Shown piece after piece: positions 1 to 55,808 of a stretch of 64,000 bases of DNA. A program made the translations under genes and the position numbers. Numbering within the stretch: position 1 is the first letter of the stretch; every line of letters starts with the position of its first letter. Below the pieces are notes generated by a model. It ran no database searches. It was not told where the DNA came from and worked only from the letters and a program-made list of their open reading frames with translations. Origin of the DNA: Diplonema japonicum (taxonomy: Eukaryota > Protista > Euglenozoa: Diplonemea); assembly GCA_964019335.1 (NCBI GenBank), contig OZ025680.1, positions 1 through 64,000 on the forward strand, given 5' to 3'.

Positions 1-318
1 GTTTGCGGGTTTGCGGGTTTGCGGGTTTGCGGGTTTGCGGGTTTGCGGGTTTGCGGGTTTGCGGGTTTGCGGGTTTGCGGGTTTGCGGGTTTGCGGGTTT
101 GCGGGTTTGCGGGTTTGCGGGTTTGCGGGTTTGCGGGTTTGCGGGTTTGCGGGTTTGCGGGTTTGCGGGTTTGGGGTTTGCGGGTTTGCGGGTTTGCGGG
201 TTTGCGGGTTTGCGGGTTTGCGGGTTTGCGGGTTTGCGGGTTTGCGGGTTTGCGGGTTTGCGGGTTTGCGGGTTTGCGGGTTTGCGGGTTTGCGGGTTTG
301 CGGGTATGCGGGTTTGCG

Positions 319-320
<2 letters not shown>
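1..320 (+). repeat. Tandem 8-bp satellite (GGGTTTGC)n, about 40 units, running off the window edge and followed by a T-run (321-348)
   Basis: Directly visible near-perfect array with two variant units (about 171-176 and 305-308). The RVCGFAGL ORFs are artefacts of it. Confidence 0.97.
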
Positions 321-355
<35 letters not shown>

Positions 356-2125: not shown

Positions 2126-3605
2126 CTAGTTGCTGATCTTCACGCACTCGTAGTGGCAAACAGACAGGCACCTGGCCCACCACTGGTTCTGCTGGTAGCA
2201 CGACAGCCCAGCCTCGCAACAGTTAGGGTCACAGCTGGCGTTCGAGGTGGGGACTGGTGTGGAGGCAGCGGGCTGAGGAGTGGGAGCGGGGGTAGGCATC
2301 GGAGTAGGGGCAGGGGTAGGAGCAAGAGTGCGGGCAGTTGTGGGCACCGGGGTGGAGGCGATGGTGGTGGGCACAGGGGTCGGCATCGGAGTAGGCATCG
2401 GGGTGGAGGCAGGAGGGGGGTTGTTCCCGTGGCTGCACCCCCTGGAAGGAGTGACGGTGGCGGAGACTGCCTGGGACCAGGCCCCGTTCCCGTCGTGGGC
2501 GGCAACCCAGAAGAAGGCCCCCCCGTTGCAGGCGTACCTTGTTCAGGTCCTCCATCACGCTGATGGCCTGCTGCGCGTTGCTGTTGGAGCCGGTACCCCC
2601 GCAGTCGCTGATGCAGAAGCCGAAGACCACCTTCGTGGGGTCGTTCCCGAAGCAGTCCGTCACAAGAGTCTTGTAGTGCGCCAGGGCGGACTCGTGTACC
2701 CCGCCGTTGATCCCGTCCGAGTTGGGGCGCGTCACCCCGTTGTAGTACTGCGGCATGTGAAGTCCATGGAGCTCGCCACCTCCTTGATGACGTTGTAGTA
2801 GCCGGTCCCCTGCTTCATGTCGATGTCCATCGGGGCGTGCGAGACCTCGCTCCCGGAGGGGAGGCTCTGCCTCAGCCCGACCGTCACGTCCCTCAGGAAC
2901 TTCTGCGCCTGCGCCCCCTTCGCGAAGGGGGACCCCCTCTGCCCGTTCTCGTAGTAGTACTCGTAGTCGATGTCCACCCCGTCGAAGTTCTGGTCCCTCG
3001 CGATCTCCACCAGCTGCTGGATCACGAAGTCCTCCTTCCCGTAGCAGTACTCCCAGCAGTCGTCCAGCCCGTCCCAAGAGCCCCCCATCCCGGCGCCCCC
3101 GAAGGACAGATTACCTTCTTCCCCGCTGCCCTCCATTTCTGCACGAGCGCCGGCTGCGGGGCGTTTCCACACACCGGCACGGGCGACGAGATCTGGCACT
3201 GCTGGTTGCAGGTGTTCTTCCCGGGGTTCCACGTGTAGGTCACCGCGAACGACACGAGCACGTGCGTGTAGGCGTTCATCTGCGCATCTGTGGGGCACGC
3301 CTGCCAGTTCCCGACGTAGGCGATCATCCTGCTGTCCTCCTCCGCCTGCGCCGACGGCCCGGGCGGAGGGGTCGGGGGCGTCGGCGTCGGAGGGGCGCCG
3401 GCACCGTGCCCCCCATCGACGGGCACCATGTCGCCTGGTTCGACGTGCACACGCTCGCGCTGCCCCCGCCAGGGTAGCACGGCTCTGCCCACCCGGATTT
3501 GTAGCAAGGCTCGTTCCCGTTGATGCAGCGTTGGCAGTCTGCCACTGACTGCCCAGCCGCCCCTGCCGCAAGCAGCATCAACCCAAGCATCTTTAGTGTC
3601 TTCAT
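2126..3605 (-). pseudogene. Secreted GH18 chitinase with a Cys-rich N-terminus, Pro/Thr linkers and a C-terminal CBM1-like module; four frameshifts (pseudogene or sequencing error)
   Basis: Signal peptide MKTLKMLGLMLLAAGAAG, KVI/LSFGG, catalytic FDGVDIDYE (DxxDxDxE), MPQYYN, GGAFFW and CCEAGLSCYQQNQWWARCL. Frame changes occur near 3393, 3110, 2757 and 2537. Confidence 0.85.
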
Positions 3606-3835
3606 TATTATTTTCTTTTTTGTGTGTATAAAAAACCTGTTAGTGGTGGCGGGGGATTCAAACAACCATGAACAAAAAAAAAAAGAAAAAAAAATGGGAG
3701 GAATTTTCTTTTTTTTCCATATTTTTTCTTTCCACCCTGAATTTCTACGATACGAAAGTAAAGGAAAGAATAAAAAAAAAATGGGGCTTTGGTTGCAACA
3801 CTATTTGGCGTTAAGTGTGCAGCGTGGTGGGGGGT

Positions 3836-6800
3836 CTATCTTGTGTTGTTACCCTTCTGCGTCGCTGCATTTTTATCGGCAGATGGGGTGGGGATACTTC
3901 GGGTAGGTTCGAGGTAGGTCGGCACGAACTTGTCGCTCCAGTCGTCTCTCCCCGGTGAACCGGTTGCGAGTCGCTGTTCGAGGATGAAGCGCACCTTGTC
4001 GTACGATGCGAATGTGGGTCTGCAGGTATACCCTCGGATCCGTTTGTTTGCACCAATGGATCGGAGGGAGGATGTCAAGAAAGGTTTCCCGGGGATAGGA
4101 GGGGGTCGTGCTTTCTTTTCGGCCACCTCTGACAGTTTTGTCAGAACTTTAGCTAGCCGGTTTGCACGCTTACGTACGTCAGCCGTATCTTCCAAGATGA
4201 GCTGTTTGGTCGTGGCCTCAAAGTCGAGTGCGAGCTCTATCCTTGAGACTGAACCATGTGGGCTCCACTGCAGCATGCGAAGCCATTTGAGCACTTCTGG
4301 GACAATCGTATCCCCTTGGAAGTGTTTCAGTCCGTTGTTCTTGTACCAATCCAGGCTTGGCACCGAGCACCCTCTTCCAACCAGCGGTCTGTTCCAAGGG
4401 AACCTTTCTACCGCGGCCTTCTTCGTTTCCTGCTTCGCGCTCACTCTCCTGATGATCGCAAGCAGCATCTGTTGTATTACCTCTGGCCGTTCCGTCTTAC
4501 ATTCCAGAGGGATGATGCCGTGTAGTGCAAGGCAGCGTGTGATCCCCTCTTGCCTGTATGCATGCATTGCAGGGGCGAACTCAGGTGCACCGCGTACCTC
4601 TTCGTGTGCCTTGCATTTCCAGAACGTGTGTATGGTGTACTCGTCTTGCGTGGTGAAGAGCGCCTCACACCCAATACATTGTACCTCTGGTTCGACGATC
4701 GGGTAGCTGCGGAACATGGCACCCGTGATCATCCTCAAGCCAAGTCGTTCCTCTTGCACGGACCTGGCACTCTTCCACACCTCGTTAGTGCGGACTTCGT
4801 CAATTGCGCGGCCGACACCAATAAAGGAGGGTCTGCCTTTGGCAACTGCGTTCCTTCTGATCGCTTTCGTCACTCGCCGTATCTCATGACCTCTGGCAGC
4901 TTTATGCACGCCCAAGAGGGCCCTGGCCCAAGGCCATCCGAGCTTGGCTGGTTCCAGAAGACGCAGGAGTGTTCCTATGGGACCAGCGGACCTCATATTC
5001 TTCGTGTACTTCTTCCGGATCTTTCTTGCACGCTTTCGTATTCTTCGATTTTCCGCTAGCCTCAGGACGGTGCCCGCCGTCTTGTAGGCAAAGGCAGCAA
5101 GAGGGTCGTGTGTGTGGCCCGGTAGTGCGATGTTCAAGAGCGCGCCCGATGAGCGCGTGGTGTTGTACGGACCCCACAGACAATCTGTTACAGCGATCCT
5201 AAGGGCGTCGATCTTCGCGTTTGACGGTGGGGCATATGGCGCACCGTATAAGGCAGCGGGTAGAATAGATTGGCTCACGATGAGGGCTTTCTTTGTAAAG
5301 GGTAGTTGTAACGCGGCCAGTCTCTTGGCTGTCTCGACCGCTTTCTCCACCCTCTTGTTGTCAGCCCTACCTTTCCTTTCCATTGACAGAGTGACTCCAA
5401 GGATCTTCACCTTCTTCTTCGTAGCAAACGTAAATCCACCCTGTCGTAGAGTTGACGTATACTTCTTCACGGTGCTGAAAGCAAGCGTCTTCTCGTGGTT
5501 CAGAGCCATCCCTGTGATTTTACAGAACTCGGATACTCTATCAACAGCTCGCTGTACGTGTCGTTCTGACTTCCTGCTGTACATCGTCACATCATCGGCG
5601 TATGAGGTAGTTTTTGCCTTCGTCAAGTGTCCGATTTCTTTGACCATGATCGACAGCAGTGCGTTGATCAGAACGGCCGACAGCGGGCACCCCTGGAGGA
5701 TTCCATTGTCCACGTGTAGCACCTCGCCTACCCCAAGCGGTAGTTTTAGTCGGCGTTGCAGATTCTCATACACGTATCGCATCGGACGGGTGATGGATAC
5801 GCTCAGGCCAAGGTCCTCTACTAACGAAAGGGCAATCTCCTGCGGAACTCGATCAAAGCACTTTTGGAAGTCCAGCGCTAAGCCATACAGTGGCCTCCCA
5901 CCTAGGAGTGCATCCTCTACCATTGTCGATATGTCCATGAGGACATGGTCAGCTCCGTGTTTGGGCCTGAAGCCGTGCATGGTGGGATCGATCCATTTCT
6001 CCTGCCATTCGAGAACATGTTTGAGTCGGACACAGGCCCACAGGCGGTAAATCACACTGGTGACGGTGATCGGTCGATGGTCAAGCGGTTGGCCTGTACC
6101 ATTTTTCGGGAGCATCGAGATCAACGCAGTCATCACAGTGTCGGGCCAACGACCCTGTAGCTCAATAGCATTGAAAAGGTCCGCGAATGAGCCAAGAACA
6201 TCGTCCGGCAGACAATGGAGCTCAGCAAAGCGCCACCCGTCAACAGCACACGCAGTCTTCTTCTTCGTTCTCGCGAGGACTACGCGCAAGTCCTGCACCG
6301 TAATCAGAGGACATGTCATTTCGGTGCGTTTGATGAACTGTCCGTAGGTCGCTTTGAATTTCTTGTACGACGGCTTGGTCTCTCCGTTTCCGAAGAGGCA
6401 GAAAACTTTCGCCCAATGCTGCTCCAAGGTCCTCAACATTTCGACTGCGTTAGCGGTGATCTGCCCACTGTCGCGCCGTACGGTTTGCGTGGTCTTCGTT
6501 TCTTGTTCCACCGTACCATCCTTTAAAAATGCCGTCACACGTTTACGGTCCGTGCCAAACTCTTCCGCAGTCCACCTCGCGTACTCCTTGTTCCGGTGTC
6601 TCTTGTTGCGGCTGATTATCTCAGCGTTCGACTTCGCAGCCCTACCCCTAAGCTCAGCCATCGCCGTGTAAATCTCGTCGTTACAAGACCAATCTTGGGG
6701 GTCGGGTCTCTCAGTCCATAGCTTCAGACGCACTGCAGTGGTGTACACGTTACGTATCTGTGCCCTCATCTCGTGCGACATGCATCCTATCGCGGGTGTT

Positions 6801-8212
6801 TCTTCCATTCGTCGGATCAATGATTTAATCTTCCGCTTAAGGATCGCGACTTGGTTCTCTTTGCAGGTCGCTGCCCCACACCCTTCATGATTCGACGGTG
6901 CGGAAATCTCCCGAAGCACCGGTTGCCGCAAGTCTCCTCGCCCCCGCTGTGTGAGATCGGCTCCTAGGAGGTCCTCAACAGCGACGGCTAGGTATCGAAT
7001 GGCCGAGTTCAGGTTAGTCAGCAGGGTAGTGTTGAAGATTCTGCGGTCGAACAAGCCAGGCGTTCCCGTGATGACGGTGTTCGGACATTTGAGCTGTCTG
7101 GGTACCTTGTACATGGGTACAAGTTGCCGCATGGCTGGTAACTTCAGCGTCACAGTTAGCGCTCGATGCGACGGCACGCCTATGTCTTCAGTAACACAGG
7201 ACACAAGCGCTGCAGCAGCTATGGGGTTCATCAGGATGTAGTCGGGTCTTGTGGCTGCAACGGCAGTAACGTAGGTGGGGCTTGGGTCCCTCCCTTGATG
7301 TTTTGCAAACATCGCGGATGCGTCCACCCAGTGCGTGTTAAGCGCATGTTGCAATGTAGGAGATGCATCGATTGTAGTGTTCATATCTCCAACTACAATG
7401 ATCGGGACCTGGCCTAGCGATATCCGCAATCGGTTTAGGATATTGCAAAGTAAGGTTTCGCGAGCAGCGACTCCAGCCTTCGACTTATCAACATCGGCGT
7501 ACAGGTTAACTACGTGTAACCACCTGTTGCCTTCACCCATCGCGTACATTACATGTTGGAATCTCGTCTGCTGTCCAACATCCGGGAGGACATGCTGTTC
7601 TATGCAGGTGCCGGGAATACGGTATAATGTGGCGACGCCTCCCCTCTCCGCTAAGGTTGGGGATTCAACACCGTCCAGCATCAGTCCACGTTGCGGTTTC
7701 CCAAATATGACACGCCTCTGCGTCATACCCGGATCCCCCTTCATTGTTGTAGCCACTTGGAATTGTGTCGTAGCCGTCAGCGCCGTCTCCTGAACACACA
7801 GGATATTGGCTGTTACCTTCTTGAGGATGTGGAATGTGTTGTTCCACGAAGTAACGTTAACCGATGTTATCGTCACTGTGTCGCACGTTTTCGCATCACC
7901 TATCGATGTCAAGGGCGGACGCGGAACACTACCTTTCGTGCCTTGAGGTTCTCCCGCTGGAACGTAGAAGTCCTTCCATAATCCTGTCGTCTTCACCTTG
8001 AGGGATATCTTCTTGCATGGCGGGCCAGGGTTGGGGTGCACATCACCATCAGCTAACAGCCTGAGGAGTGCCTCCATCGCGATGTTTGAATATGCATGTT
8101 TTTGGTTGCATATTCGGGGAAGGGAGAAGTAGGGGCTCATGCTAAACACTGAAGGGGGGTAGCAGAGCAGGGGAACACTGATTGGGAGGAAGATCATGAT
8201 ACGGGTCCTCAT
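3836..8212 (-). CDS. LINE ORF2: short leader, 2A-like peptide, AP endonuclease, reverse transcriptase and C-terminal zinc-finger-like region
   Basis: APE motifs SVNVTSW, LCVQET, VVNLYA, VGDMN, RPDYIL and SH. RT motifs HRPITV, GFRP, LDFQKCFD, QGCPLS and YADD. CxxC...HTFWKC near the C-terminus. The start is placed at the ATG overlapping the ORF1 stop, although the frame is open up to 9160. Confidence 0.93.
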   Translation of the reverse strand: MRTRIMIFLPISVPLLCYPPSVFSMSPYFSLPRICNQKHAYSNIAMEALLRLLADGDVHPNPGPPCKKISLKVKTTGLWKDFYVPAGEPQGTKGSVPRPPLTSIGDAKTCDTVTITSVNVTSWNNTFHILKKVTANILCVQETALTATTQFQVATTMKGDPGMTQRRVIFGKPQRGLMLDGVESPTLAERGGVATLYRIPGTCIEQHVLPDVGQQTRFQHVMYAMGEGNRWLHVVNLYADVDKSKAGVAARETLLCNILNRLRISLGQVPIIVVGDMNTTIDASPTLQHALNTHWVDASAMFAKHQGRDPSPTYVTAVAATRPDYILMNPIAAAALVSCVTEDIGVPSHRALTVTLKLPAMRQLVPMYKVPRQLKCPNTVITGTPGLFDRRIFNTTLLTNLNSAIRYLAVAVEDLLGADLTQRGRGDLRQPVLREISAPSNHEGCGAATCKENQVAILKRKIKSLIRRMEETPAIGCMSHEMRAQIRNVYTTAVRLKLWTERPDPQDWSCNDEIYTAMAELRGRAAKSNAEIISRNKRHRNKEYARWTAEEFGTDRKRVTAFLKDGTVEQETKTTQTVRRDSGQITANAVEMLRTLEQHWAKVFCLFGNGETKPSYKKFKATYGQFIKRTEMTCPLITVQDLRVVLARTKKKTACAVDGWRFAELHCLPDDVLGSFADLFNAIELQGRWPDTVMTALISMLPKNGTGQPLDHRPITVTSVIYRLWACVRLKHVLEWQEKWIDPTMHGFRPKHGADHVLMDISTMVEDALLGGRPLYGLALDFQKCFDRVPQEIALSLVEDLGLSVSITRPMRYVYENLQRRLKLPLGVGEVLHVDNGILQGCPLSAVLINALLSIMVKEIGHLTKAKTTSYADDVTMYSRKSERHVQRAVDRVSEFCKITGMALNHEKTLAFSTVKKYTSTLRQGGFTFATKKKVKILGVTLSMERKGRADNKRVEKAVETAKRLAALQLPFTKKALIVSQSILPAALYGAPYAPPSNAKIDALRIAVTDCLWGPYNTTRSSGALLNIALPGHTHDPLAAFAYKTAGTVLRLAENRRIRKRARKIRKKYTKNMRSAGPIGTLLRLLEPAKLGWPWARALLGVHKAARGHEIRRVTKAIRRNAVAKGRPSFIGVGRAIDEVRTNEVWKSARSVQEERLGLRMITGAMFRSYPIVEPEVQCIGCEALFTTQDEYTIHTFWKCKAHEEVRGAPEFAPAMHAYRQEGITRCLALHGIIPLECKTERPEVIQQMLLAIIRRVSAKQETKKAAVERFPWNRPLVGRGCSVPSLDWYKNNGLKHFQGDTIVPEVLKWLRMLQWSPHGSVSRIELALDFEATTKQLILEDTADVRKRANRLAKVLTKLSEVAEKKARPPPIPGKPFLTSSLRSIGANKRIRGYTCRPTFASYDKVRFILEQRLATGSPGRDDWSDKFVPTYLEPTRSIPTPSADKNAATQKGNNTR
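8021..8077 (-). other. 2A-like (StopGo) ribosome-skipping motif MEALLRLLADGDVHPNPG/P
   Basis: Resembles the helical leader plus GD(V/I)ExNPGP consensus, with H in place of E, and lies upstream of the APE domain. Confidence 0.8.
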
Positions 8213-10332
8213 CTTTGGCGATGTGTGCTCTTCCCTGTTGCACACTTCTGATGTTGTTGTTTTTGTTGATGTTGTTGTAGAAGTTGTTGAGTTGCGCCTA
8301 GCTGTTGCACCATAGGCGCCATTGCCTGCGCGATCAACCTTTGTACCACATCGGTAGCTCCAAGCGGGTCTTGGGTGGGCGGGGTCGGTTCTGGTTTCTT
8401 GGTAGCGGTAACCTGCTGTACGGCCTGCTGCAGTTGCTGGATCTGTTGGACGATGGGTTTCAGTGCCTCTGCGATGATGCCGTTCACCATGTCCGCCCAG
8501 TTCGGTGGTGTAGGCTGCGGGGACGACAACGAAGGTTGTTGGGGTTTCCAGGCGCTCGTCGTGCCACCTTGGAACGTCACAGTCCCGCCGATCCCTACAC
8601 CTTCCTTCTTCGCCTTCGGGTTTTTCGCCTTTGGGTTTTTCGCCTTCGGGTCTCTCGCATTCGGGTTCTTCGCCTTCGCCCCAGCCGTCTTTTTCGGTCT
8701 TTGGTTTACCACAGTCTTCGATGTCACGTCGCCCTTCTCCGCGTCGGTCTCCTCCATCTTGGCGTCCACTCGGCGCTCGTTCTTCTTCCTTAGCAGTCCG
8801 ATCCCACCGAACAGCGGCACCTCGAACCCGGGTGGCTCCTTCTGTGCTAGCAGCATCCACCTTTTGGTCGACCCTCTTAGGGATGACCGAGTCACCTCGA
8901 CCGTCCACCCCCATGCAGCCAACATCATCTTGAGCTCTGTTGGTCTCATGTCGCGTGGCACCTTCTCCAGATACCAAGCCTCCGTCTGCGGTGTCGCTAG
9001 ACCCTTGGCTTCGAGGTTCTTCCGGAGTTCGTTCTCCGCTGTACCCGGCGCCACACGAATACCAACCCGCTGTCGCTGGTCCACCGCAACCCCAGCGTAT
9101 TGCTGGTACTTCTGTGCCACCGAGACGGCCATCTCGAGTGTCATACCCTTCTTCAGCCACACCACGCTGTCAGAGGTCTCATCCATCGGCAGCCTTGCGG
9201 TGATCCCGTCCTTGCCACTCCTACCTAGTAGCTCCGGTGCTCTGTTGGATGCCACACAGACCGTGGTCTTCGCGCACTCCGGGTATACCCTCGGCCTGGA
9301 GAGGTCGAAGTCCTTACCTCCAACCCAGGTGGTGAACATTTTGTTGGCCTCATCCAACGAGGACTTCTTGTGTAGCGTGAGATGCACCAGCGTCGTGCAC
9401 TTCTTCTTGATGGTTTCCGCCTGTCTTGCCATGGGGGCGAGATCGGACCAACCCATATGTGACATCCAAACTGTCAGTGATGTCGTGCCGGAGCGGTCTG
9501 GAAGGTCAAACGCGACTTGTTGCTTCTTGCCAGGGATCGCTGGTAGCGGTTGGCGGGAGATGAGAGTGAGGTGCTCCGGTTTGTGGTGCGACAGGTGCCA
9601 TTCGCACGCTGCCATGTCTTCCTGCTCGACTAGCATGACACCACAGCAGTTTTCCGTCACACCGATGATGTCTGTAATGATCGGGAATGTCCAATCCAAT
9701 TCGCGCAGCTTCAAGTTCGCAAATGTTTTCGGTGGGAGGGGTTCCTTCCCGGCGATCATCTCCGGGAGGGATGCGGTCTCCGGCCGTACCAGGACTGGGT
9801 TGGTCGTCAACAGGCCGTCCGGGCCGTCCGCGTCTTCCTTCTTCAGGGCGTAGTATTCACCCCCGATCTCAGCCAGCCAGCCGACTGGCACCCCCTGCGC
9901 GTGGCCAATCATCTGTGTAGTGATGACCTCCCCGTCCGTCTTGACGAGCCCAATGGGCGCGCCAATGCGCTCCGCGTAAGCGAGGATGGCGACTTCGTCG
10001 CCCCTTGCATTCCACTTCCTCAGGCTCGCGACGTAGTCGTCGAGCCTGACGGCAAGGAACCTCGCGTACAGCTCCTTGTTCGACTCCATCACCGACGCAA
10101 CCAACTCGCGGATCGTCGCTTCGGCGCTTACCTCTCCGTGTCTGATAAAGGAGAGACAGCGAAATAGTTGTCCTCCTTGGTTACCGCATGAACGCAGGCG
10201 GAAACCGTAGCTCCTCACCTGCCCGTCGTACCACTTACGCACCTGATGTGCCCACCCCTTCTCGCTCGTCTCTTCGCGGCCGAAGCCCCCGGGCGGCGCC
10301 TCCGAGGAGGCGGACGAGCCGGGTTTTGTCAT
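8209..10332 (-). CDS. LINE ORF1 (707 aa): N-terminal degenerate OTU-like domain, possible RRM-like region, KAKNP repeats and a Gln-rich coiled-coil C-terminus
   Basis: The ATG lies about 33 nt after the SL. GFRLRSCGNQGGQLFRCLS...YVASLRK..ARGDEVAILAYA...GGEYYAL follows the OTU pattern. Confidence 0.85.
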   Translation of the reverse strand: MTKPGSSASSEAPPGGFGREETSEKGWAHQVRKWYDGQVRSYGFRLRSCGNQGGQLFRCLSFIRHGEVSAEATIRELVASVMESNKELYARFLAVRLDDYVASLRKWNARGDEVAILAYAERIGAPIGLVKTDGEVITTQMIGHAQGVPVGWLAEIGGEYYALKKEDADGPDGLLTTNPVLVRPETASLPEMIAGKEPLPPKTFANLKLRELDWTFPIITDIIGVTENCCGVMLVEQEDMAACEWHLSHHKPEHLTLISRQPLPAIPGKKQQVAFDLPDRSGTTSLTVWMSHMGWSDLAPMARQAETIKKKCTTLVHLTLHKKSSLDEANKMFTTWVGGKDFDLSRPRVYPECAKTTVCVASNRAPELLGRSGKDGITARLPMDETSDSVVWLKKGMTLEMAVSVAQKYQQYAGVAVDQRQRVGIRVAPGTAENELRKNLEAKGLATPQTEAWYLEKVPRDMRPTELKMMLAAWGWTVEVTRSSLRGSTKRWMLLAQKEPPGFEVPLFGGIGLLRKKNERRVDAKMEETDAEKGDVTSKTVVNQRPKKTAGAKAKNPNARDPKAKNPKAKNPKAKKEGVGIGGTVTFQGGTTSAWKPQQPSLSSPQPTPPNWADMVNGIIAEALKPIVQQIQQLQQAVQQVTATKKPEPTPPTQDPLGATDVVQRLIAQAMAPMVQQLGATQQLLQQHQQKQQHQKCATGKSTHRQR

Positions 10333-10365
10333 TTTGAATGATTTGATAGTTTACCCAGTAACCCC

Positions 10366-10402
10366 CAATAAAGTACAGAAACTGTAGCTTTAGAATCGTT
10401 GG
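10366..10402 (-). other. Genomic copy of the spliced-leader exon, CCAACGATTCTAAAGCTACAGTTTCTGTACTTTATTG (37 nt)
   Basis: Contains the conserved euglenozoan SL 3' half (AGTTTCTGTACTTTATTG) with a diplonemid-like 5' half. It is followed by GGGG, not by an SL-RNA GT intron. Confidence 0.93.
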
Positions 10403-10449
10403 AAAAAAAAAAGAAGAAGAAAAAACAACAAAAGAATTTATAAAAAATA

Positions 10450-11070
10450 TATATATGAGTTAAAGGAAGTCTTTGTGAGACACCCCCTTGTTCTCATCCT
10501 CTACCTGCACCTGTCCTCTTTCAGCAGCGGTTTCTCTTCCTTTGGTGGTCTTGCCGGCCTTCTCCCTAGCCTGGCCGCTTTTTCTCTTCGTTCTCTTGCA
10601 CATTGTCCTTTCAACGCCTCTTGGTCATGCTTGGTCTTCGGTGATGTAAATATCGCCCTCCTGTTCCATCCGATCACCGCCTTTGTCCTCCCGATGGATC
10701 GTAGTGTGTGCACCCTTGTGCTCGACTCAGCTGGGAAGGCCCTCCTTCCTTTCACCTTCTTCAGTACCCTAGCTCCCATGTGTGCCAGATCTTCGTCATC
10801 AATCCATGCAATCCCTCGCTTTCTGCTGTACTTCTGCGAGATCCCCCAGCTTCCCTCCCAGGGTCTTCCCAGTCACGTTCCGAAATTCAGTGCCAGCTCC
10901 ACCGTCGACACTGACGTGTTCCTGCTGCCTGCATACCAGCGCAGTTGCCGCATCCACCTCAGCACCTCCTTCGTGTACTCCCATAGGACATGCCGGTAGC
11001 TTGCCGAAGTCCTTGTCCGACGGTTCTGGGTGTTCTTGGCCTTGCGTGATCTCCAGCCACTGGTGTAAAA
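10450..11070 (-). mobile_element. 5'-truncated, degenerate 3' end of a related LINE
   Basis: Broken frames read EVLRWMRQLRW...VSTVELALNF and HTLRSIGRTKAVIGWNRRAIFTSP. These match ORF2 C-terminal EVLKWLRMLQW...VSRIELALDF and SLRSIGANKRIRGYTCRPTFAS. Confidence 0.82.
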
Positions 11071-11227
11071 AGAAAAAGAAGAAGAGTGAGAACATTCTCC
11101 CGTTATGAAAGATTGAGATGGTCCTTATGGAGCTGTTGTAGTAAAGCAAGACTCTAAAAAACTCTATTTTTAAAAATTCTATTTTTCTTCCTTTTCGTTT
11201 CGCACTTTGTTTTCTGGTTTTCATTCT

Positions 11228-55168: not shown

Positions 55169-55530
55169 ATGACTTTGGTTGCTTATAAGCCGCCTGGCGT
55201 ACAAGCAACTGCAGGCACAGTCTACTTGATTACAGGGGGTGCTCCTCGGCCGAGTTGTAGCTTCTTCTGCGTTCCGCGTCGTGTCCTTAATGCGTGCGGT
55301 GTATAACTCAACCCCAGCCGGGGCGCCCCGGGTAACCAAGATTCTGCGCTCGTGCAGTTTGCTGCATGTTCGTCACCCTGAGCATCTGCAATACCTTCTC
55401 CCACTCGGGCGCTACCGGTGATGACCGACGAGGAGGTCAACAGCGAACAACACATCTGATGTACTTCTTATATTTCCATGTTATCCCCACCACCAATAAA
55501 GTACAGAAACTGTAGCTTAGAATCGTTGGT
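55169..55530 (-). mobile_element. SL-headed short non-autonomous retroelement (about 360 bp)
   Basis: SL at 55494-55530. The 3' end CTGCA..CTT..ACGCCA...GCAACCAAAG.CAT is shared with the LINE 3' UTR (3781-3822) and is followed by a T-tract. A second copy lies at 59074-59286. Confidence 0.8.
55494..55530 (-). other. Second genomic SL exon copy, ACCAACGATTCTAAGCTACAGTTTCTGTACTTTATTG
   Basis: Matches 10366-10402 except for one missing internal A and one extra 5' A. Confidence 0.92.
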
Positions 55531-55808
55531 GGGAAAGAAAGAAATGAAGAACGGAAGGAACAGAAAGGCTAAAAATAACTATTTATAACTATGTGTCTTT
55601 GTTGTTCGCACGCAAAAAAAAAAAAAGTTTTAAAAGCTGCGAAAGTGTTTTGCTCGGCACAAGTACATGTAGTTATAAAATCACTTTTGAAAGATAAATA
55701 TTTGTAACAAAAAGAAAAAAAGAAAATAATAAACGACAGTTTAATACAGCTTTTTAAAAGAAATCCGAAATGCACCGGTGAGCGAAAAGGGGATGATTGC
55801 GTGAATCG

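Follow-up and report, generated by a model that had tools for sequence, protein, structure and literature searches.

The elements SLACS, CZAR and CRE, as well as NeSL-1, encode a restriction-like endonuclease, insert in spliced leader (SL) RNA genes and carry SL-gene sequence on both sides. L1Tc displays a 2A-like peptide at the start of its enzymatic open reading frame (ORF). At its 5′ end, L1Tc harbors the internal promoter Pr77 together with a hepatitis delta virus (HDV)-like ribozyme, and its transcripts are unspliced and carry poly(A) (PMC3383444, PMC1874656). In Perkinsela sp., pieces of the SL-RNA gene and its intron, or the mini-exon followed by 20 nucleotides (nt) of intron, are dispersed, some of them near retrotransposons (PMC5601477). 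Outside the Euglenozoa, the relict-DinoSL retrogenes of dinoflagellates are well described as the result of a recycling of processed cDNAs (PMC5585692, PMC6050394, PMC12014239). Here we describe a 6.6-kb long interspersed nuclear element (LINE) on the minus strand of a 64-kb stretch of Diplonema japonicum DNA (contig OZ025680.1, positions 1 to 64,000, referred to as the window). The element is intact, encodes an apurinic/apyrimidinic endonuclease (APE) and a reverse transcriptase (RT), and is headed by nt 3–39 of the SL. All coordinates refer to the window, whereas family counts stem from searches of the organism's own 62.5-Mb assembly. The position of the SL suggests, with a probability of roughly 0.8, that the LINE family is expressed by trans-splicing, that the window copy was made from a trans-spliced RNA, and that RNA still bearing a short leader ending in AG gave rise to most full-length copies.

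Like ingi and L1Tc, the window LINE is a euglenozoan APE- and RT-encoding non-long-terminal-repeat element in a polycistronic genome, and it shares with L1Tc the position of the 2A-like peptide. It differs from both in lacking an Rfam ribozyme match, in a 5′ boundary formed by an AG acceptor or the SL, in its T-run tails, and in an ORF2 whose nearest relatives are Diplonema LINEs. With SLACS, CZAR, CRE and NeSL-1 it has in common the physical association with SL sequence; however, it encodes an APE, occupies dispersed T-run sites and bears the SL exon alone, at the 5′ end only. The genome resembles that of Perkinsela in being a euglenozoan genome littered with retro-copied SL sequences, but here the exon stands alone and is fused exactly at the mRNA acceptor site. 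As in the dinoflagellate retrogenes, a DNA-encoded SL is located at the 5′ end of a retrocopy and SL-less parental forms exist. In contrast to them, the tagged unit is an autonomous LINE of a euglenozoan together with a partner resembling a short interspersed nuclear element (SINE), not a host gene, and most copies keep a remnant of the acceptor and not the SL. This partner, a non-autonomous family of about 330 nt, possesses the 3′ end of the LINE and a T-run tail, as in LINE/SINE pairs with a shared 3′ end; unlike in those pairs, no polymerase III-type head is evident, and the partner starts, like the LINE, with either an AG acceptor or the SL. SL-tagged retrocopies are already known from dinoflagellates, while the euglenozoan case of a LINE with a SINE partner is undescribed in the searchable literature. 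Our literature search, which largely did not cover subscription journals, retrieved no autonomous LINE with a SINE partner recording spliced and unspliced states in Euglenozoa, and SL-headed retroelements are unmentioned in the D. papillatum genome paper and in a recent diplonemid intron paper.

Junction between the spliced leader and the LINE

The layout given in a preliminary description of this locus, namely the SL followed by an untranslated region (UTR) of about 33 nt and the start codon of ORF1, was confirmed (Table 1). The outer limits named there, 3772 and 10412, each include a run of ten T residues (T10). No SL-RNA intron follows the SL, and neither this intron nor the block found upstream of SL-RNA genes is present anywhere in the window. 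The 3′ terminus reads ...AAGCCCCA followed by T10 and is devoid of SL sequence, again as described before.

Table 1. Position of the LINE, its flanks and related elements in the window (all on the minus strand).
Feature	Position	Strand	Remarks
5′ flanking T10 run, candidate target-site duplication	10403..10412	-	directly 5′ of the SL; identical T10 directly 3′ of the LINE
DNA-encoded SL exon, nt 3–39 of 39, CCAACGATTCTAAAGCTACAGTTTCTGTACTTTATTG	10366..10402	-	37-mer
LINE 5′ UTR, 33 nt, starting GGGGTTACTGGG...	10333..10365	-	first base G (10365) at the trans-splice acceptor position
ORF1, 707 amino acids (aa)	8209..10332	-	ATG at 10332, stop at 8209; Lys/Gln-rich C-terminus
ORF2, 1458 aa	3836..8212	-	counted from the ATG in the stop/start overlap
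LINE 3′ UTR, 54 nt, ending ...GTGTTGCAACCAAAGCCCCA	3782..3835	-	3′ end partly common to the SINE-like partner
T10 run on the sense strand	3772..3781	-	tail and/or target-site duplication; without poly(A)
Other retroelement family, 5′-truncated copy	10442..11066	-	>500 candidate matches, 93–95% identity; very high depth
SINE-like partner	55169..55531	-	~330 nt plus SL-derived head (55494–55531); LINE-like 3′ end

The assembly contains 12 LINE copies with a complete 5′ end as compared to more than 40 with a 3′ end, and the truncation points of the 5′-truncated copies are scattered. All 12 complete copies start with the same G, and the sequences further upstream are unrelated to each other. In ten of them this G is preceded by a T-run and (A/T/C)AG (for example TTTTTTAG, TTTTTTAAG, TTTATAG or CAAAAG), in one by T10-CGGG, and only in the window copy by the SL, nt 3–39. 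Both forms display five consecutive G residues, as AG+GGGG in the sister copies and as ...TTATTG+GGGG in the window copy. The SL is therefore attached to the LINE at precisely the point to which an AG acceptor would guide it. Since the LINE side of the join is the very base that follows T-run and AG in 10 of the 11 other 5′-complete copies, reverse transcription of a trans-spliced RNA offers the best explanation for the window copy, a reading that is well supported and that agrees with the origin proposed in the preliminary description.

The further proposal that the SL is carried along as the family propagates found no support, as the SL occurs on one of the 12 complete 5′ ends and the others carry a leader ending in AG. 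Comparison of the 5′-complete copies confirmed the common junction but placed the SL on the window copy only. Absence of the SL from other copies had been named as evidence against trans-splicing, should these copies possess a promoter or ribozyme of their own. The other copies indeed lack the SL, but bear a splice acceptor in its stead, and this speaks all the more for trans-splicing rather than refuting it.

The SL-less complete copies possess a pyrimidine-rich leader of 2–25 nt which ends in AG and is not part of the target. In contrast to these copies, 5′-truncated ones abut T-runs directly without an AG, and at the 3′ flanks the T-run follows immediately after CCCCA; the AG is therefore element-borne. 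An origin of T(n)AG as a target-derived duplication was rejected on the same grounds. Candidate duplications containing letters other than T (C62, TTTCTATTTT; C18, CTTTTTTTTTTT; C93; C103) are situated 10–25 nt upstream of the first G, and the stretch in between is pyrimidine-rich, ends in AG and varies from copy to copy. As these duplications lie upstream of the leader, the T-run represents the target, and the short leader with its AG moves with the LINE. The sequence comparison thus identifies the acceptor, a pyrimidine-rich leader plus AG, and not the SL, as the heritable 5′ boundary of the family. Because leader and AG are retained, most full-length copies probably derive from unspliced RNA. 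Some 9-mers are shared further upstream (TGATCTTTT, CGGTGTGCT, TCGGTTTTT), but were not counted as a conserved leader; they are more simply read as the ends of other retroelements whose T tails may have received the LINE.

At least six of the 5′-complete copies are about 100% identical, and the window LINE matches several SL-less copies at 100% over about 1.97 kb at each end, which argues for a young family. Older subfamilies with 88–93% identity exist as well. In L044 (C12:713947, GGGGTTACTGGGTAAACTATCAATCATTCAAAAGTGACTGGCTGG...), a derivative of the LINE 5′ region, about 480 nt are deleted; the joint 9862→10343 was seen in three runs (reads X1, X2 and X4).

The SINE-like partner and other copies headed by the spliced leader

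The two-state 5′ pattern of the LINE is repeated by its SINE-like partner on a much larger sample. This family, for which the candidate matches number more than 1,400, shares the 3′ end and the T-run tail of the LINE; the copy in the window ends ...AACCAAAGTCA plus a T-rich run. The first bases at the junction with SL or acceptor are GTGGTGGGG. When the 5′ contexts of the first 100 of 321 exact matches were inspected, 58 consisted of a T-run plus AG and 12 of one fixed context ending in CAG. An exact SL preceded four copies and a degenerate SL one. T-run plus TG (15), T-run plus GG (7) and other contexts (3) make up the remainder. In the window copy the SL head is one base shorter than the SL, with CTAAGC instead of CTAAAGC.

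Most inspected SL-headed retrocopies begin at SL nt 2, whereas the window LINE begins at nt 3; both starts would fit cDNA synthesis stopping near the cap. At seven sites (C8:849420, C12:811877, C20:399043, C58:506924, C76:2342, C83:358325 and C102:195398), all belonging to families other than the LINE, the SL is followed by TTTCTGTACTTTATTG, a relict SL that starts after an internal CAG. The sequence of these sites indicates that trans-splicing had joined a new SL to the CAG within an earlier DNA-encoded SL, in repeated rounds of splicing and retroposition. Tandem relict SLs arising by re-splicing at an SL-internal AG are likewise found among the relict-DinoSL retrogenes (PMC5585692). None of the 12 complete LINE copies carries an SL plus a relict SL.

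Identity of the spliced leader

The 37-mer heading the window LINE is the SL of the organism. The complete SL comprises 39 nt, AACCAACGATTCTAAAGCTACAGTTTCTGTACTTTATTG. Its 5′ boundary, AACC, follows from the organism's own SL-RNA genes, from three foreign ones and from the published 39-nt euglenozoan SL, which differs from it at two positions (PMC3795323). The foreign genes, found in metagenomes, have the exon in common with different introns and upstream regions, conservation starting at AACCAACG. A 22-nt core of the SL, expected zero times by chance in the window, was found twice (10366–10387 and 55494–55515), and a 23-nt core occurs 214 times in the assembly as compared to none for the reversed control. 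Nine of these places are of the SL-RNA gene type, in which the core continues into the intron GTACCCAATCTGATCC... (also written GTACCCAATC...). In the fetched examples of this type a conserved block, ...GGAGAAAGAGGTCCGGGAGGTTA, is located upstream of the exon, and one SL-RNA gene adjoins a 5S rRNA gene. A search of the genome for the SL outside SL-RNA genes, as suggested in the preliminary description, placed 95 of the cores in two families located mostly near contig ends.

One locus (L004, C2:150572) displays the SL exon together with the SL intron, and its upstream flank is unlike the conserved SL-gene block; it may represent a dispersed or retro-copied SL-RNA gene. A scan of metagenomes with the SL core yielded 80 loci. 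SL-headed transcript contigs predominate among them, next to a few foreign SL-RNA genes, and homology to ORF1 or ORF2 was absent from all 80. In four transcript-like metagenome or metatranscriptome contigs (L092, L098, L143 and L124), the initial SL runs into another SL whose first few bases are missing, the joins reading ...TTATTG|ACGATTCTAAAG... or ...TTATTG|CGATTCTAAAG.... They are either double-SL mRNAs or template-switch artefacts of library preparation.

Tails, target sites and orientation

At all LINE 3′ ends found in 30 fetched loci, CCCCA is followed on the sense strand by a T-rich run which starts with 3–28 uninterrupted T residues, a few older copies varying by one base; a poly(A) or A-rich tail was found at none of them. 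Such termini may arise if the A-strand of a T/A run is nicked and its end primes on the U-run that a read-through transcript carries past CCCCA. Insertion of the LINE could also simply have split a T-run.

The upstream T10 of the window copy forms part of a T-rich tail belonging to an older retroelement (fragment 10442..11066). This fragment ends ...CTCATATAT(AT)n plus the tail in which the LINE inserted; a T-rich tract precedes it, too. The envisaged pre-insertion site would lead from the T tail of the fragment directly into ATTCTTTCC.... About 170 nt downstream of the LINE lies the start of a host ORF, whose first residues resemble a signal peptide.

That the LINE rides on host polycistronic transcription, another point of the preliminary description, is supported indirectly by its orientation. 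Within flanks of 1.5 kb, neighboring open frames have the same orientation as the LINE copy in 19 cases, the opposite one in 2 and an unclear one in 8; the bias of 19:2 corresponds to p ~2e-4 in a two-sided binomial test, a crude measure. All long ORFs of the window lie on the LINE strand.

Proposed route of retroposition and alternative explanations

In the route we propose, the LINE sits in sense orientation inside polycistronic gene arrays and would be transcribed with them, presumably without a promoter of its own. The short pyrimidine-rich leader plus AG would represent an outron remnant that serves as trans-splice acceptor. Trans-splicing would add the capped 39-nt SL to the first G (GGGGTTACTGG...), resulting in an mRNA with a 33-nt UTR followed by ORF1 and ORF2. 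New copies would arise by target-primed reverse transcription inside T-runs, which end up on both sides of the insert, the usual template being the unspliced precursor that still bears leader and AG. In case of the window copy, the template would already have been trans-spliced, which would place SL nt 3–39 at the 5′ end; the two missing cap-proximal bases could reflect a stop of the reverse transcriptase near the modified cap.

Several observations weigh against this route. SL addition at the LINE acceptor is deduced from genomic copies. Furthermore, under LINE cis-preference the mRNA that is translated, and hence spliced, should usually serve as template; presence of the SL in only one of 12 copies is not expected if translated mRNA is preferred. 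Logan contigs end at 10366, the 37-nt SL being longer than the assembler word, and none of them bridges the junction between flank, SL and LINE. The matching T-rich strings of 8–12 nt which flank LINE copies on both sides, among them the two T10 runs of the window copy, are of low complexity and their limits are uncertain. Finally, T-runs of at least 8 nt in the window number 20 on the sense strand as compared to 14 A-runs. On these numbers the excess of T-runs on the sense strand of host DNA is only modest and a strong bias was rejected; T-run targeting alone thus does not clearly explain the co-orientation with host frames.

Among the alternatives, the SL as a heritable 5′ module, with SL-bearing copies acting as masters that propagate with it, fares best, yet is improbable. 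The window copy would make a plausible master, being intact and identical to the active subfamily, with a T10 tract and SL-internal AGs upstream of the LINE, and the tandem SL sites demonstrate that copies of this kind can undergo re-splicing and renewed copying in other families. A module of this type is nevertheless difficult to reconcile with the frequency of the SL, which is found on one of 12 complete LINE 5′ ends and on about 4–5% of SINE 5′ ends, or with the lack of any 5′-complete LINE copy combining SL and relict SL.

A template switch, by which the enzyme would have jumped from the 5′ end of a never trans-spliced LINE RNA onto SL RNA or a free SL exon, is modeled by human U6-L1 chimeric retrocopies. 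Unusual SL joins do occur elsewhere in the genome in chimeric or tandem arrangements (L018/L019 and L024/L025). However, a jump onto SL RNA would have brought along the intron, which is missing, and chimeras usually join at variable, truncated positions, while the LINE side of the join is the exact base that follows the AG in ten other copies. By established splicing chemistry, a free LINE 5′ end at this base itself needs splicing. We therefore regard the switch as very unlikely.

The chance is slimmer still that the SL came to stand before a genomic LINE copy through a read that was chimeric or derived from cDNA. The break of the Logan contigs at the SL would suit such an artefact of assembly or library. 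Against it stand the 214 SL cores of the assembly, only nine of which are of the SL-gene type, and the inspected SL loci, which represent many different dispersed retrocopy families with flanks of their own. In addition, matching T10 runs bracket the SL and LINE as a unit in the manner of other insertions, and contig C33 extends over more than 589 kb.

An insertion in or beside an SL-RNA gene in the manner of SLACS, CZAR and CRE, the SL then belonging to the gene unit, would find precedents in the SL-associated retroelements of kinetoplastids and in the hundreds of dispersed SL-RNA fragments of Perkinsela, some near retrotransposons (PMC5601477), but can practically be dismissed, as the window contains neither SL intron nor SL-gene upstream block, upstream there is a T-run belonging to another retroelement's tail, the endonuclease is an APE with no restriction-like domain detected, and the other 11 complete copies reside at unrelated, non-SL sites.

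If the LINE does derive from trans-spliced and unspliced transcripts as proposed, it would provide genomic proof of a LINE that solves the "no promoter" problem under polycistronic transcription by means of an acceptor and not of a promoter or ribozyme. SL, AG-leader and bare T-run would then constitute a built-in marker for the RNA species used by the LINE reverse transcriptase, which bears on cis-preference, and would serve as natural tags by which retroposition could be dated in the genomes of diplonemid-like organisms. In addition, an unusual chemistry of T-run targets and tails would be exposed.

A wider interpretation is offered tentatively, and we would sooner doubt than adopt it. A whole community of retroelements might have been rebuilt around polycistronic transcription and trans-splicing, with mini-outrons, T-run targets and tails, and copies made from defined splicing states. 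Besides the LINE, the SINE-like partner with its high copy number would belong to this community, as would the outward-pointing SL-capped families at chromosome ends and one or more other families for which candidate matches run into the hundreds. All members would be promoterless, each inheriting a mini-outron composed of pyrimidine tract and AG. Insertion into T-runs would be strand-specific, primed from the A-strand nick, and T-runs would replace poly(A) as tails. Leaders of 10–25 nt may mark stops of the reverse transcriptase at the trans-splicing branch point of Y-intermediates, and SL-headed copies would mark finished mRNAs, the genome thus being a fossil record of RNA-processing intermediates.

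Coding and untranslated regions of the LINE

ORF1 and ORF2 overlap in an ATGA stop/start motif at 8212–8209. Residues 69–152 of ORF1 (window ~9877–10128) display weak similarity to OTU-like cysteine proteases (E = 0.045, below the Pfam cut-off), and the sequence GGQLFRCLSF occupies the position of the OTU catalytic Cys. The N-terminal region of ORF1 may thus contain an inactive OTU-like domain; a scored OTU domain is present in some related LINE ORF2s.

In ORF2, the 2A-like motif DGDVHPNPGP is encoded at 8050–8021, 54 codons past the ORF2 start. The APE domain (Exo_endo_phos, ~7828–7181, open-frame residues 445–660) was detected with 26.6 bits at a cut-off of 24.5 and is located N-terminal to the RT domain (RVT_1, ~6109–5387, E = 2e-23). 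A Pfam scan of the C-terminal 485 aa for a restriction-like endonuclease detected nothing, which, together with the APE, bears out the endonuclease assignment of the preliminary description. Among solved structures, ORF2 matches human L1 ORF2p best (E = 2e-22), and among database entries it comes closest to LINE ORF2s from Diplonema papillatum and from EukProt transcriptomes, with 34–40% identity.

An Rfam scan of 3600–11200 returned no match at E ≤ 1, in line with the ribozyme-free 5′ end postulated before. The SL plus UTR of the window LINE showed no significant fold (z = -1.0), and a search for an arm complementary to the SL found none; a structured 5′ UTR or anti-SL hairpin was consequently rejected.

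Families and repeats at contig ends

The two families that account for 95 of the 214 SL cores, SL+GTCGTTCGTGTT... and SL+GTCGTCTGTGTT..., are related to each other. Their copies are mostly located within about 10 kb of contig ends, point outward and are sometimes arranged in head-to-tail stacks (examples are C5:503(-), C36:2072(-), C38:573580(+) and C33:589661(+)), so that they look like telomere-associated SL-capped retroelements.

Contig termini consist of (GTTTGCGG)n arrays, as seen at window positions 1–350, at C1:3, C4:3 and C5:2 (+), and at C3:999812–999963 (-). The strand running 5′ to 3′ toward the terminus is C-rich, (CCGCAAAC)n, and thus represents a non-canonical 8-nt repeat with reversed polarity as compared to TTAGGG telomeres. 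Inward of the terminal array of the window, a run of 30 T residues is followed by two copies of AAAAAGGGGGACTTGAGAA.

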